The translations under genes and the position numbers were made by a program. From Carpediemonas membranifera BICM (Eukaryota; Protista; Fornicata), in contig JAHDYR010000062.1 in NCBI GenBank assembly GCA_019828565.1, positions 793,666 through 857,665 of the forward strand: DNA of 64,000 nt, written 5' to 3'. The notes under the pieces were generated by a model. The model saw only the letters and a list, made by a program, of their open reading frames with translations. It did no database searches and had not been told where the DNA came from. Below are positions 9,973 to 46,743 of the stretch, one piece after another; the stretch's first letter is position 1; every line of letters begins with the position of its first letter.

Positions 9973-11193
9973 TTACTCAATTGGCTTCATATCCGCCACC
10001 TTCTGGTAGACAGTCATACACTGGTCGCAGAACCTGACACGATAGTCCTGGCCGTCGAGATGGAACTCAGCATAGCTGAAGTGTTTCTCTTCGCAGAACC
10101 AGTTTAGGCACGCCCGGCAGACGCCAGTGTCCTTTGTCGACTTGTCTCCGTCCTTGATACACGCGTGACATCTGTTAGACCTTCCTGCCAGACTGCAAGC
10201 TGCGCAAACCTTTCTGTTCTTACCATCAATCCTCTTCTCTCTGACACACTGAAGATGCATGAACTGATGGCAGAGATAGCACGTTTCATACTCGTTTCTT
10301 TTCATGTTTGGGTTGAAGTACCATTCAGGTGAGGCACAAACAGCGCATGCGAACAGTAACTTACGCTGATATAGCTTCAGAAACGTCGCTTGCTTGAGGG
10401 CGGGGACCTTATCGTTCATTTCAACGGCCTTGGGTGACTGCTTGAGGAGATCAGTGACAGTTGTGGAGAGTGAAGCCGTCACCATCGCGGCAACCTCCTT
10501 CAAGTCAGCCTCTTCGAGCCTCGATCGCTTCTGAGCAGGCTCATGCATCTGCGCATCAAAATTAAGCTTCTTGACGGGGGAATCAGGCTTGATGGTAGCC
10601 AAGTCAGCTCTTTTTCTGAGCTTTGGTACCAATGTTGTCACTGGAGTCTTTGTGGGTGTCTCTGCGGGTGTTTCTGCTGGGGTACGTGGCTCAGGCTGGA
10701 GCTTGCGATGCTTGATCCTGATTACAACGGCTGGAGGCCATTGAATGCCGGTGCAAGTGATCAGACTGGAGACATCGTGGAGTCCAAGTCCCCGAAACAG
10801 CACAGACATCCTGTTTCTAAACTCCTGCAAGTGTTCAGCTGCATTTGCTCTGTCTCTGACAACCAGGTAGGGTATCTTTGTGCCAATGAGCTCTGTGCCA
10901 CCCTTTCTACTTGCCACAAATGCCTGAATGGGCTCAGTAGTCGTGCGCCTGACGGAGTTTGCAATAGCAATCTTGCGAAAGCCGTTGCAGAGGCCCGATA
11001 TCACATCCTGCATGCCAAGGAGAGCGCGATGAACGTCAGAGGTCGTCAGACCGATAGTTGGGATGTCCGCGACGTCGAAAAAGCATTCCAGGAAGCTAGT
11101 CACGAACAGCCGGCGGTACTCTGTTCTCTTATCCGATCCGCAAGACGTGCCCTGCGAAATCTCAGCTTTCTTCGCAGTTTCACTGGTCGTCAT
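9973..11193 (-). CDS. PHD-finger protein with second C-terminal zinc finger
   Basis: CAVC...CYLCHQFMHLQC...CAAC = C4HC3; then CHAC...CRACLNWFCEEKH...FCDQC. Confidence 0.8.
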   Translation of the reverse strand: MTTSETAKKAEISQGTSCGSDKRTEYRRLFVTSFLECFFDVADIPTIGLTTSDVHRALLGMQDVISGLCNGFRKIAIANSVRRTTTEPIQAFVASRKGGTELIGTKIPYLVVRDRANAAEHLQEFRNRMSVLFRGLGLHDVSSLITCTGIQWPPAVVIRIKHRKLQPEPRTPAETPAETPTKTPVTTLVPKLRKRADLATIKPDSPVKKLNFDAQMHEPAQKRSRLEEADLKEVAAMVTASLSTTVTDLLKQSPKAVEMNDKVPALKQATFLKLYQRKLLFACAVCASPEWYFNPNMKRNEYETCYLCHQFMHLQCVREKRIDGKNRKVCAACSLAGRSNRCHACIKDGDKSTKDTGVCRACLNWFCEEKHFSYAEFHLDGQDYRVRFCDQCMTVYQKVADMKPIE

Positions 11194-11263
11194 ATTCTCA
11201 TCTTAAACTGCGCAGGTGTTGACGACAATGTTCCGGTTATCCACGAACGGAAGGCTTAATCAT

Positions 11264-11443
11264 ATGACCAGTTGCCTCCATGAAGTCGGCAAGATACAAG
11301 ATTCTGTTCGAGAAATACGAAATCACATCACTGGGCTGAATTGCGAGGGTTTGGTGAATGAGAGGCTGAATGACACACAACACGTTCTGGAAGAGATAGG
11401 AGATATGTTTATAGATGTAATACAGCAACTTAAAGACCACTAA
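11264..11443 (+). CDS. Small helical hypothetical protein (59 aa), divergent from the PHD gene
   Basis: Amphipathic ORF followed by AATAAG. Confidence 0.35.
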   Translation: MTSCLHEVGKIQDSVREIRNHITGLNCEGLVNERLNDTQHVLEEIGDMFIDVIQQLKDH

Positions 11444-11577
11444 CACGTTATTATCACTTTGAATAAGCAATGAATGGTTATGCAACATCAGCACCTACCT
11501 ACGAATCACAAGAATGCCCCTAGCACGTCGTATGCAAGCAAAAATGAGACTTACCCGTACCTTCCGCACGTTTCTCT

Positions 11578-43004: not shown

Positions 43005-43161
43005 TACATGAGTCACCCTTGCAGTGGACGTGGTTGTGGAGCACCCCCAGTGTCTCCACGTCCGCCACCAGCGCCAGATCCGCCACCATGCCCTACATCA
43101 GCACATTTGTGTATTTACTTTGTAAATTACTTTGTAAATTTGTCCTATTGCTATTGAAGCA

Positions 43162-45725
43162 ATGCGTTTCGAGAACTGGGAAGTCGTCATCACCTATGGG
43201 GCGGACAGTTCTCTTGGATCTATCATCACCGCTGTCTTAGACGAGTTTCTGCTCCGAAACCGCGACAAATCGTTTCGTTTAGACAGCAAGGAGCAGTGCT
43301 TGCGCATTCTCCGAGATTTCCTGACGTCATGTCCACTGAGGGTGACACATAGTGATGCTACGTTACGTAGTGCAGTCGTTAATGCTGATTGGAGCGCATT
43401 GATGAGGAATCACAGCACTGCTCATGTGACTGTTACGCGAGTCGACAACGAGGCGAAGACGAAGAGCCTATACACGGCCATGGCAATTATCTGTGCCGTC
43501 GAGTTAGGGAAGAATCGCTACGACCGACTCCGCCATGCATTTGTTTCAATGGCCTCCGACATGGGAGTTCGCCTTGGAATTCACACTCCACCGGTGGTAG
43601 ACAGTCTCCAGAATCTTGGGTATGACCTGCTGTCCATCCCAGCCATACGATCTGTTATATCAGACCCAACACTGATCGAGGACGTCAACGCGTTCACTCC
43701 TGAGCAGCCCGATGTCTCTGGGCGTGATGGGGTGTCTAACCAAGAGCTTCAATGTCAAGCAGGAGCCGGTTTCACGCGTAGCGTGGAAGTCGCGGAGGCT
43801 TTTTACGTCCTATATGACCCAACCACCCACACCGACCTGCAAGAGACTCTCGATGAACACGACTGCCTCTTCGCTCACCACTTCGAGAAGATATCGGGGG
43901 AGTCACGGCTATACATTTCGCATGATGATCCATCCAAGCTGCCGGAGATTCAGAGATTATGCCGGAACATGGGCATCATTCCGCGTGGAACAAAGAAATC
44001 TCACCGGATGGTGATCAGCGCTCTGTCCTATGACCCTGTCGCCCAGATTAAGTTCATGCTGAAGTTCCCCGACCGAGTTCAGCGCGATATCAAGTCAAGC
44101 AAGTTCGTTCAATCCGTCACTATTAACCCGGAGAGCCGACAGGAGGCTTATGGTCTTGAGATGCTCCTATGGTTTGATGGATATCGGGCCGACTGTACGG
44201 CGGTCAAATATCGCATAATTGATCGCGAGGGAGCAGCCCTACCACAGAAGATTACCCCACCCATGACGCTTCTTACATTTCAGGGCACAGAGAAGCTCAT
44301 TCCTTCGTTCTTTGATGATGTACAGCGGCTAATGAACAAGCTCATTGGTATCCCCTTCGCATGTGGTGACAGTTCGTTGCTCCCACGCAGCCGTGTTGTC
44401 ATCAGCCTGCTCGGGATCTGCGGCGATCACAAAGCGTTGCAGATTGTTAGTGGCGTCAAGCGGGGACGATACTACCGCTCTCCATTCTCCTCCCTACACA
44501 TGGGAAAGGTCGCAAGCGACCCGTTTGCCAATCGTTGCGATCGCTGGACAATCGCAGATAGCATCCGTCTTCGTGACGCTGGTAGCGTGAAAGACATGAC
44601 ACGGTTTGGGTCCCGCGATGGTCACCGAGATGTCTGCTGTCTGACCTATGCCAACGAGATAGATGGCCCACTTCACGTGCTCACAAAGTACGCTGATGTC
44701 ACGTTCATTCCACCTGTCATGCATGTGAGTCACTATCTTATGAAGGACTTCTGGACGCTGCTTGGCCTTGTCAAGGTTCAACACGCTGGTCAGAACGTGC
44801 ACACACTTGAGCAGATTGAAAAGCTGTTCACGCGGACAACTGGCTGCAACGAGCAGAGCTGGAACAGACGAAAGCTCGCGACACTAGTCAACGAGCACCT
44901 TGAGGAGTTTGACCAGTCACTCCAGCCCTTCATACTCCTTACAGCCAAGTTACAGGCGTTGTATTACTCCTCTGACCACGTGACACACCAGACAATCGCT
45001 TTCCATCACGCGGCGTCCTTTTCTACGTTCATCATGTTCCATGTCTTGACGTTGTTCTATGACCTTCCATCGAGTCGCTCCTCGGTTGCTACGACGCTCA
45101 ATGATGGTCTCAGACTGACTTACTCTCCCAAGTTTACCGGCTCGCTATATCTGAATGCAGTGGTGTCAGTTCTGCCCAAGGTTCACTCGAAACTGCGGCT
45201 TCCGATGTTCTATTTGCTTGAGGAGTACTTCGAACGTGATTTCCTCATCAATGCCCAGTTGCGAGTGGACAAGCATCGATCTTGGGTTCTCGGCTTCCTG
45301 GCTCAGAAGACAATGGTCGGTCGTGTCCTTGCTCACTACACCCGCCGTGGCTCATCGAGAAAGCATGGTATGGTGTTGCCGATTGCAAGGCAGTGTAAGT
45401 CTGTCACATTCTGCTCGTGTCTATTTGATGCCGACCGGTGTGCCGCCTGGAGAAATCGTCTATTAACTAAGGTACCCAACTGGGATAGGAGGCGAGCCAA
45501 CAGTCGCTGAATGCGCTGTTTAGTGGATGGGTCAAGGGTATCTGTGAGGAGCCGGAGGAGATCCGGGAACTCATCACTGTTGACGAGACAGCCAAGACGA
45601 TTTGTGTAAGGACGGCGGACAGTGGTCTGGATGAGACTCTCTGCATCTGCAATCTGTGCAACAGTGAGCAGCGAGCGGAGGAGCTGATGAGGAGGACTGG
45701 GCACAATCTTCGCCCGAGAAGATAG
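43162..45725 (+). CDS. RAG1/Transib-like DDE transposase, paralog 2 (frameshift near 45487 hides the last ~78 aa)
   Basis: WFDGY, CGDHKALQIVSGV..RSPFS, PPVMHVSH, FTRTTGCNEQSWNR, LLEEYFERDFL shared with paralog 1; other frame continues to LCICNLC...LRPRR*. Confidence 0.72.
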
Positions 45726-46651
45726 ATAGATGGATAATCGGAGTATGTATATAAAGGGTTCTTTATGTTTACACTATCTTCACCAATCTACAGTCAATTA
45801 CGTCTATTGCGAGCGAAGAACAGCTTTCAGTAAGAAGTTTGAGGCAACTGTCAGGTAATTCTTAGTAACGTCGTCGGCAATGGCGTAATAGTCATCCATT
45901 TCAGTCAAGTGACTCAGCTTAACGCGCATTTGCTTGATTTCGGCGATAAACTCGGCCCGCTTCATTCGTTTGTCATAAAGTGCATTCCGGCCATATCACA
46001 AGTTTTCTTCATCACAAGGCACGCACGGGGGTGTAAGCGGGACCGAGGCTACCACCACAGCCTCTTCTGAGCCGATGGATACCTTTTGTTGATTTGCCAG
46101 AATTGACCAAACGACGAGGAATGCTTGATATGCCGCGTATGGATGATTTGAAGAAGAACTGAAGGTGAAAGACAAAGATCATAGAAATACACTTCATGCG
46201 GCTCACTTTTGGAGACATTGGAGGTAAATTAGCTTTTAGGATCGTTTTTCGTTTGCCAGGCAAAGTTTTGAGTGTTTTCTCGAGAATACTCGATGCCGTA
46301 TGCAATCTTGCTGCTATTTGATGCAGAACAAAGGTTGTTATGTGACACAGATGTTCTCACTTGCTTTCGGCCTTCTTTGTTGGCGAGCAAAAGCAAACTT
46401 CTTTGGGAGCAATTCCCAAAAATCGCATCTTTACGCACCCAGGAAATTTTATCTCGGCATACTGGACCAGTGGGGGAGGCACGGCAGTCTATCCCGACCC
46501 TAGATGAACCATGAGACAGTTTTTCGACGAGAGTTTGTGCGATGCCACTGACTTCGCGAGTGAAGGTCTTCAGCATGTTGTACGGATGTCTAAACGATGC
46601 CTTGTGCAAGTGCAAGGCGTAATACGCTGTAGTTTAATTGTTTGAGCGCGT

Positions 46652-46743
46652 TCATTTTTTCTTGCAATCGTCCTTTTTTCATGTATTCCGGGACTTATTC
46701 CGGGACTTAAAGTCCCGGTTAAAGTACCAGAAAAAACAGCATG
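46652..46743 (+). mobile_element. Candidate DNA-transposon terminus B with TATTCCGGGACT x2 and an inverted AGTCCCGG
   Basis: Abruptly joins the middle of a Gypsy integrase; similar to 11634-11715. Confidence 0.55.

Follow-up and report, generated by a model that had tools for sequence, protein, structure and literature searches.

The 64,000-nt window of Carpediemonas membranifera DNA analysed here contains two genes for RAG1-like proteins, which a preliminary description had assigned to a single giant transposon spanning positions 9973-46743. Coordinates refer to this window, except those preceded by L00x, which refer to comparison loci from public assemblies. Gene A (17425-19821, minus strand) encodes 798 amino acids (aa). 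Gene B (43162-45510, plus strand) is intact, with its N-terminal domain kept. As had been described, the two genes face outward and are paralogues, their products being 33% identical over 651 aa (E 1e-95), but gene B stops at position 45510 and not at 45725, giving a protein of 782 aa. Their start codons lie 140-160 nt beyond the arms of an inverted repeat, IR-L (19963-20292) and IR-R (42674-43004), with 331 nt at 99.4% identity. This is the sole long inverted repeat in a self-comparison of the window, and the similarity of the arms stops about 10 nt past their reported limits. Overall, we consider it probable that this region of the window is a nest in which three or more members of a single family of large cut-and-paste transposons have piled up as broken copies.

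The proteins were examined first at the sequence level. Within the 95% of its length that could be aligned, the gene A product has 100% identity to the hypothetical protein J8273_4482 of C. membranifera. Pfam contained no family for A, for B or for 18 family members, even at an E-value of 10, and Pfam scans of 38 open reading frames (ORFs) of the window and loci, plus 18 and 18 family members, gave no transposase family. Likewise, a family profile had no match at E 10 among all PDB sequences. Word-indexed protein searches, using a single sequence or a profile, gave just two proteins. When 1.84 billion representative proteins were searched exhaustively with the profile, 35 relatives were retrieved, 17 of which were strong. 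According to their cluster records, the 20 relatives that were checked belong to C. membranifera, to GCA_002919055.1, an NCBI assembly without annotation, or to metagenomes, and informative names are lacking in all of them.

AlphaFold2 models of the two proteins were built on a 36-sequence alignment (pLDDT 77.1 and pTM 0.78 for A, pLDDT 76.9 and pTM 0.73 for B). The models show a beta1-beta2-beta3-alpha1-beta4-alpha2 RNase H core. In gene A, W250 and D252 are carried by beta1, and D333, within the motif DHKA, is located at the end of beta4. Residues E611/E612, within the motif LLEEYFERDF, belong to a helix about 280 residues past D333, the E being preceded by a helical insertion of about 280 aa. 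The catalytic candidates of gene B are D339, D422 and E687/688. Across the 36 homologues, conservation of W250, D252 and D333 reaches 90% or more, and the LLEExFERDF motif is conserved in the family alignment.

The models were compared to the PDB with Foldseek. For A, the top 45 matches comprised 42 RAG1 chains (E 5e-8 to 2e-5) and 3 HzTransib chains (E 2.6e-4 to 1.1e-3), aligned over about 525 columns, with the first 44 at E 4.8e-4 or better, followed by Hermes at E 1.8e-2. For B, the top 47 were all RAG1 (down to 1.1e-7) or HzTransib (from 2.3e-5), the first 46 having E-values of 1e-7 to 1e-4, and the P element came next at E 9e-3. With both paralogues, HzTransib was matched with a Foldseek probability of 1.0 and other superfamilies only appeared at E 9e-3 or worse. 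The best and essentially sole significant structural matches were to the Transib/RAG1 core (HzTransib 6pqn, 6pqr and 6pqx; mouse RAG1 4wwx, 6cg0 and 6oet), with about 520-800 aligned columns. At the fold level, the models support the assignment of A and B as DDE transposases with a RAG1/Transib fold, as the preliminary description had proposed, and catalysis would be carried out by the DDE triad.

Gene A is located in a stretch (16081-19707, minus strand) that has a match, at 99.56% identity, in L002 9995-13611 only. Upstream of position 19707, gene A begins with 38 codons that bear no relation to the family and replace its N-terminal domain, whereas L002 continues into this domain. Motif and terminal inverted repeat (TIR) searches found neither of the two A-type TIRs in the window. 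Judged from this sequence comparison, gene A is N-terminally truncated and is part of an internal 3.6-kb fragment of an 8.6-kb element that is complete on another contig. Position 16639 (TATGCCTGTCTGG) was considered as an A-type terminus and rejected, L002 running on past this point; it represents a pseudo-end inside the element and is related to the genuine A-type TIR. The adjacent segment (11716-16638) is a 2.2-kb tandem array of 2.24 units, detected by self-BLAST, with one 301-aa ORF per unit. Each unit includes 558 nt of A-type internal sequence, matching L002 13064-13611.

To the left of this array lies the right-terminal part, about 2 kb long, of a third element type (9662-11715, plus strand), which ends with ...AACAGTATG and has its body to the left. 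The last 48 nt of this part (11668-11715) recur at 100% identity in L006 16005-16052, beyond which the flanks diverge. The terminus at 11715 fits the family consensus given below, and no partner TIR for it is present in the window. This right end includes a PHD gene and a subterminal palindrome (11533-11589 / 11592-11648), whose right arm carries the motif CATTTTTTCTTGCA; the palindrome had been noticed earlier and is real. L006 also holds an outward-facing pair of RAG1-like genes of different types, 4637-6610 (minus strand) and 9110-11628 (plus strand), 2.5 kb apart, with a 171-nt A-type 3' fragment between them.

Gene B belongs to a left-truncated B-type element (20310-46743, plus strand) containing an OTU-like gene, orf162, a long interspersed nuclear element (LINE), an array of HEPN-like ORFs, gene B and a right terminus. 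Window blocks 20310-22942, 42400-44800 and 44789-46720 are colinear with L008 407-3023, 3021-5416 and 9754-11688. The basic B-type unit is about 6.9 kb long and consists of the OTU-like gene, orf162, a 482-nt segment, gene B and a 1.2-kb right arm. The right arm with its terminus (45511-46743, plus strand) has a hairpin at 46700-46718 and ends with ...ACAGCATG. Similarity to L008 stops at 46720, and this position was tried as the B-type end. It was rejected, the last 29 nt being found further on in L008, where an insertion with a 6-nt duplication has displaced them by 2.1 kb. These 29 nt, which end at 46743 in the window, recur at L008 13813-13841 against a different flank. On the other side of the terminus, the sequence 46741-47136 (plus strand) codes for the C-terminal ~133 aa of a Gypsy pol protein, comprising the GPY/F motif and chromodomain, and shares 35% identity with the window's own pol at residues 1369-1501 (E 7e-20). 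B-type termini adjoin Gypsy pol at differing residues in the two copies. The sharp end cutting a Gypsy integrase at 46743, reported previously, is therefore borne out by the L008 repeat and by the pol match. Motif and TIR-similarity searches found no B-type left terminus anywhere in the window. TIR-like similarity was also sought between the 3' arms of A and B, and none was found.

The B-type element has grown from about 7 kb to 26 kb by the nesting of the LINE and a four-fold amplification of the HEPN unit. The LINE (22943-34245, plus strand) is 11.3 kb long and is bordered by a 15-nt target-site duplication (TSD; 22928-22942 and 34246-34260). It has an A-rich coding strand and, as a non-LTR retrotransposon, carries APE endonuclease (Exo_endo_phos, 29719-30396, E 6e-10) and reverse transcriptase (RVT_1, 31340-32208, E 3e-11) domains, and its empty site is present in L008. 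Thus, much of the interior that had been taken for transposon cargo is a nested LINE. The annotated protein J8273_7060 (P0003) has an aberrant C-terminus that matches LINE 32959-33066 (69% over 36 aa), so that a LINE of this family seems to have inserted into that RAG1-like gene. To the right of the LINE, a 2035-bp tandem array of 4.2 units (34246-42878, plus strand) has units composed of the native 482 nt plus 1554 nt containing the HEPN-like ORF. A 203-nt part of IR-R forms the 3' part of every 2035-bp unit. The inverted repeat is internal and not terminal: each RAG1-like gene does lie behind one arm, as stated in the preliminary description, but the arms are no element ends. By analogy with the L003-type layout described below, the 331-nt inverted repeat is best read as an internal repeat of the B-type.

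At least six sequence types of the RAG1-like family are found in C. membranifera. The L003-type, represented by J8273_8438 and its relatives, has at least six copies of about 99% identity. These copies share a right end, ...CACAGTATG, located about 1.2 kb beyond the stop codon, against five different flanks. Three complete elements could be delimited. The first is of the L003-type, runs from L009 779 to L004 13670 and measures 22,734 bp; its 74-nt TIRs (98.6% identity) contain a hairpin and it is bordered by a TC duplication. The second, of the A-type, occupies L002 8363-16930 (8,568 bp), with 22-nt TIRs of 100% identity and again a TC duplication. The third comes from another organism (L010 2171-13799, 11,629 bp) and has 74-nt TIRs of 93% identity and a GC duplication. 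Each of the three carries a single RAG1-like gene. A multi-gene element of the RAG1 family exceeding 20 kb, as had been proposed, does therefore exist in this species, with 22.7 kb, although it is not the segment 9973-46743.

In order to assess the TSDs, the flanks were joined in silico and stop-free codons were counted across the empty sites. All three complete elements are flanked by a 2-bp direct repeat, and removing the element together with one copy of the repeat reopens a stop-free ORF. The reopened frames are 191/51 aa (a Gypsy chromodomain), 170/200 aa (another ORF) and 199/200 aa (a Gypsy RNase H). A 5-bp deletion likewise keeps the frame, yet the 5-bp flanks of the three elements are not repeats. 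Because only 2 bp form an actual direct repeat, the TSD is 2 bp. A fourth insertion was recognized from its empty site: the P0002 element (L001, end at 7065) has inserted into a further RAG1-like gene, of which contig L012 carries the intact form. The flanks of readable insertions are always a retrotransposon-type ORF or another element of the family, which may reflect targeting, or mere survival in repeat-rich DNA. In L004, two L003-type elements are placed tail to tail around an 8.1-kb stretch (13671-21791) that holds a gene with a weak match to Dam methyltransferase as well as a reverse transcriptase (RT) gene; C. membranifera is mentioned in a 2026 preprint dealing with adenine methyltransferases found in retrotransposons.

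All 11 termini, from six types and at least two organisms, carry the invariant sequence 5'-CAT[A/G]CTG[T/C]. The TIRs measure 22-74 nt and often contain a hairpin. The terminal motif became convincing only once paired TIRs had been found. In a first pass, ACAG[CT]ATG was used as an element-specific 8-mer, and several of the regular-expression matches were due to chance. A motif match at L005 6489 proved to be the end of a 4-kb long terminal repeat (LTR) element with 83-nt LTRs and not a family terminus. Overall, this family is made of unannotated, mobile, large multi-gene DNA transposons of C. membranifera, as indicated by fold, TIRs, TSDs and copy structure, and their transposition is probably of the cut-and-paste type. 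An RNase H/DDE fold, repeated termini and TSDs, on which the preliminary description had made its proposal depend, were thus all found.

Terminus-like sequences are also found inside the elements, many copies of which carry internal tandem arrays. In the L003-type, each unit of the internal arrays has one copy of the element's own terminal motif (CACAGTATG), at positions 6882 and 7978 of L003 and 4911, 6007, 7103, 12894, 13990 and 17830 of L009. The A- and B-type arrays carry instead one degenerate pseudo-end per unit (window positions 34739, 36775, 38810, 40846, 42878 and 16639), with a 76-nt sequence common to both types. In the L003-type, inverted copies of a 1096-bp array flank the OTU segment. 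This segment is in opposite orientations in L003 1-8242 and L009 4692-14350, which are of the same element type, suggesting that it was inverted through recombination between the 1096-bp arrays. Finally, the motif (C)ATTTTTTCTTGCA(A) occurs at 46654-46667 and 11636-11648 of the window and at L009 856-869, the latter copy being near the left TIR. It is placed 68-91 nt inside the termini of three element types and is a candidate subterminal binding site.

The companion genes were then considered. The PHD-finger-like gene of the window (9973-11193, minus strand, 406 aa) has homologues adjoining the RAG1-like gene in the L003-type, where it is divergent and immediately upstream, in L001 and in L010. 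An invariant C4HC3 pattern and a second zinc module are common to the four PHD homologues. The ligands C283, C286, C305, C308, H313 and C333 are invariant in these four proteins, which come from three sources, and the remaining ligands are present. The match to Pfam PHD_4 (E 0.013) is below threshold, and Pfam and PDB sequence searches gave no kelch/RAG2 match. The OTU-like cysteine-protease gene (20360-22094, plus strand) is frameshifted at about 20957 and is intact, with 572 aa, at L008 457-2175. It carries the motif SDGNCVAYC...H, of which GNC...H is invariant in three homologues (L008, 572 aa; L003-type, 550 aa; L010, 610 aa); it has no Pfam or PDB sequence match. The HEPN-like ORF (318-337 aa, minus strand), present once per 2035-bp unit, has an RNRAAH motif. 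It matches three Pfam HEPN families at E 0.01-0.08, all below the cut-offs, and fragments of it are present in A-type and L003-type elements. Hence, the earlier PHD, OTU and HEPN labels agree with what is conserved in homologues, but library matches are sub-threshold or lacking. An element is usually accompanied by the PHD and OTU-like genes, often by the HEPN-like one, and the accessory genes are syntenic across element types and species. This supports the view that they are genuine conserved passengers of the family and not random neighbours.

Taken together, these features are compatible with the following mechanism. The transposase would bind the TIRs led by CAT[A/G]CTG, the hairpin and the A-rich subterminal motif being candidate binding sites. 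The element would then be excised and integrated, with strand transfer staggered by 2 bp. Chromatin reading could be a task of the PHD protein; more generally, any role of the accessory proteins and of the arrays is conjectural.

Several points weigh against describing the window as a nest of RAG1-like transposons. At the sequence level, no link to RAG1, Transib or any transposase family was found with Pfam at E 10 or with the PDB profile search, and the evidence for a relationship to RAG1 is for this reason confined to predicted structures, with modest TM-scores of 0.40-0.51 per target. The PDB contains no CACTA, Mirage or Chapaev transposase, so that "closest to RAG1" means closest among solved structures. 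The left end of the B-type was never seen, and the full B-type architecture is deduced by analogy with the L003-type. The window is not colinear with the public assembly GCA_019828565.1: its A and B blocks match, at 99-99.6%, the separate contigs JAHDYR010000017.1 and JAHDYR010000069.1 with different flanks. The window may thus represent another assembly or strain, or a paralogous locus missing from the assembly, and its relation to L002/L008 may be that of paralogues or of variant assemblies of a single genome.

The limited set of solved structures leads to another explanation, according to which the elements would be ordinary members of an already described lineage with 2-bp TSDs (Mirage, ESTA or Lanisha), matching RAG1 for lack of solved CACTA, Mirage and Chapaev structures. 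CACTA/En-Spm elements are typically large, with several ORFs and subterminal repeat arrays, which would suit this explanation. It has to be judged against the CACTA/Mirage/Chapaev/Transib (CMCT) clade, comprising EnSpm/CACTA, Mirage, Chapaev, Transib, Plavaka, ESTA as well as Lanisha, which is defined by 5'-CA..TG-3' termini and 2-5-bp TSDs (Kojima 2025, PMC12730594) and has C(2)C and H(3-4)H as diagnostic motifs (PMC12730594). The termini of the family and its 2-bp TSD fit this definition. Moreover, ESTA, which is linked to RAG1 by remote homology only, has transposases that match RAG1 by HHpred and 2-bp TA TSDs (PMC12730594). However, neither Transposase_21 nor any other Pfam transposase model was matched even at E 10, and the TSDs of the family are TC, TC and GC, not TA. 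In an 18-member alignment, PPxMHxSH is conserved, so that the His pair is H-x2-H and not H(3-4)H. The same alignment has no conserved CxxC after DHKA, a single Cys (YPCPF) being present in some members only; C(2)C is thus not conserved, and the two diagnostic motifs are not both present. Relatives were also few, with just 35 in 1.84 billion proteins and no informative name among the 20 checked. We therefore regard membership of a described lineage as unlikely, and the family best fits a new lineage of the CMCT clade, set apart from the known lineages by their descriptions. The metamonad protist host and the PHD, OTU-like and HEPN-like accessory set further distinguish it from described CMCT lineages. 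No description of these elements was found in the literature searched.

The family was also compared to individual systems. The family shares with RAG1 and Transib the DDE residues on an RNase H fold and a long helical insertion before the E. The spacing is D-81/83-D-~265-280-E, as compared to the RAG1 catalytic residues D600-D708-E962. In contrast, sequence identity to RAG1/Transib is about 10%, with no Pfam RAG1 or PDB sequence match. Transib elements measure 3-4 kb with one gene, whereas those of the family measure 8.6-22.7 kb with at least three genes. The TSD of Transib is 5 bp and not 2 bp, and the family shows no conservation of its zinc ligands, C(2)C and H(3-4)H. The 2-bp TSD, the absence of sequence homology and the missing zinc motifs together exclude a canonical Transib; the Transib label of the preliminary description holds for the fold but fails, with its 5-bp TSD, in the strict sense. 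The family terminus CATACTG is identical to the heptamer CACAGTG of the recombination signal sequence at five of seven positions, the third base being T where 5'-CACNNTG has C.

Plant CACTA/En-Spm elements are large, contain more than one gene and carry subterminal or internal arrays of terminus-like motifs. The family resembles them in this layout, being large and multi-gene with arrays of terminus-like motifs, and differs by its CATRCTG termini, its 2-bp instead of 3-bp TSD and the lack of a Transposase_21 match. As in ProtoRAG/RAGL of invertebrates, a gene for a RAG1-fold protein stands beside a PHD-finger gene, usually adjacent and divergent. However, the PHD protein has no kelch/RAG2 match, and TSD and TIR differ.

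A more far-reaching proposal is that the family represents a deep sister lineage of Transib/RAG1 in a metamonad. The PHD protein, as a chromatin reader, would have been a RAG2-like targeting partner since early eukaryotes, and the inverted arrays would be extra transposase-binding sites driving inversion of the accessory segment. We hold this to be rather improbable. If true, the logic of V(D)J recombination, with a recombinase and a PHD partner, would be far older than animals.

The single giant transposon of the preliminary description, running from 9973 to 46743 with two outward-facing diverged RAG1-like genes, one per end, appears very unlikely. In its favour, the two genes do face outward behind inverted repeats, L006 has another head-to-head pair of differing types, family members of more than 20 kb exist, and the A and B types share the 76-nt pseudo-end. 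However, CAT[A/G]CTGT occurs once on the plus strand of the window, within the LINE and in surroundings devoid of TIR-like sequence. Gene A is without its N-terminal domain and without either A-type TIR, and the 3' arms of A and B have no similarity. The complete A-type element in L002 has no B-type gene; conversely, the second B-type copy, in L008, has neither A-type sequence nor IR-L in the 406 nt of left flank available. The LINE inside is independent, with its own 15-bp TSD and its empty site. Because a single transposase gene is found in each complete element, the A and B types stand apart elsewhere and the supposed cargo consists of the LINE and an amplification, the segment is not one element. 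A last explanation, in which host genes, domesticated or never mobile, were spread by segmental duplication in a repeat-rich region, draws on the abundant tandem arrays and rearrangements of the window and on the A and B types being seen in just two copies each, but it is hardly credible in view of the paired TIRs with 2-bp TSDs whose removal restores ORFs in three elements, of the empty site (L001 versus L012), of identical termini against five different flanks and of a terminal heptamer conserved across types and species.

RAG1, which puts together the antibody genes of vertebrates, is the classic example of a transposase that became an enzyme of the immune system; its known relatives, Transib and RAG-like, are compact elements, mostly from animals. 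The probable nest of cut-and-paste transposons described here extends this group by a family of structurally RAG1-like transposases from a free-living metamonad; they escape sequence searches and are annotated only as "hypothetical protein". The family offers a testable outgroup for how RAG1-type enzymes pick ends and targets, and a new lineage for transposon classification, and it accounts for many unannotated repeats of the Carpediemonas genome.

The remainder of the window was also analysed. Self-comparison showed that the window is very rich in repeats. A tandem array at 49738-60623 is made of 3.7 units of 2.93 kb with 98-99% identity, and further copies of this unit are found at the left end of the window (1-3003 and 7636-9661). 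Each unit has an ORF of about 600 aa with no Pfam match. The two left copies are separated by a Gypsy element (3002-7641) inserted into the unit, whose gag-pol ORF (3077-7600, minus strand, 1507 aa) contains RT, RNase H and integrase domains. Its direct terminal repeats, TGTGGCAC..., measure merely about 40-50 nt, and LTRs so short are unusual. Other TG..CA elements with tiny LTRs are present at L005 2464-6485 (83-nt LTRs, empty site in L003) and at L008 5417-9753 (TSD CGTGC). Directly to the right of the Gypsy fragment that follows the B-type terminus, an ORF with an ABC-2 transporter membrane domain (47191-48123, minus strand, E 9e-11) is probably the nearest ordinary host gene.

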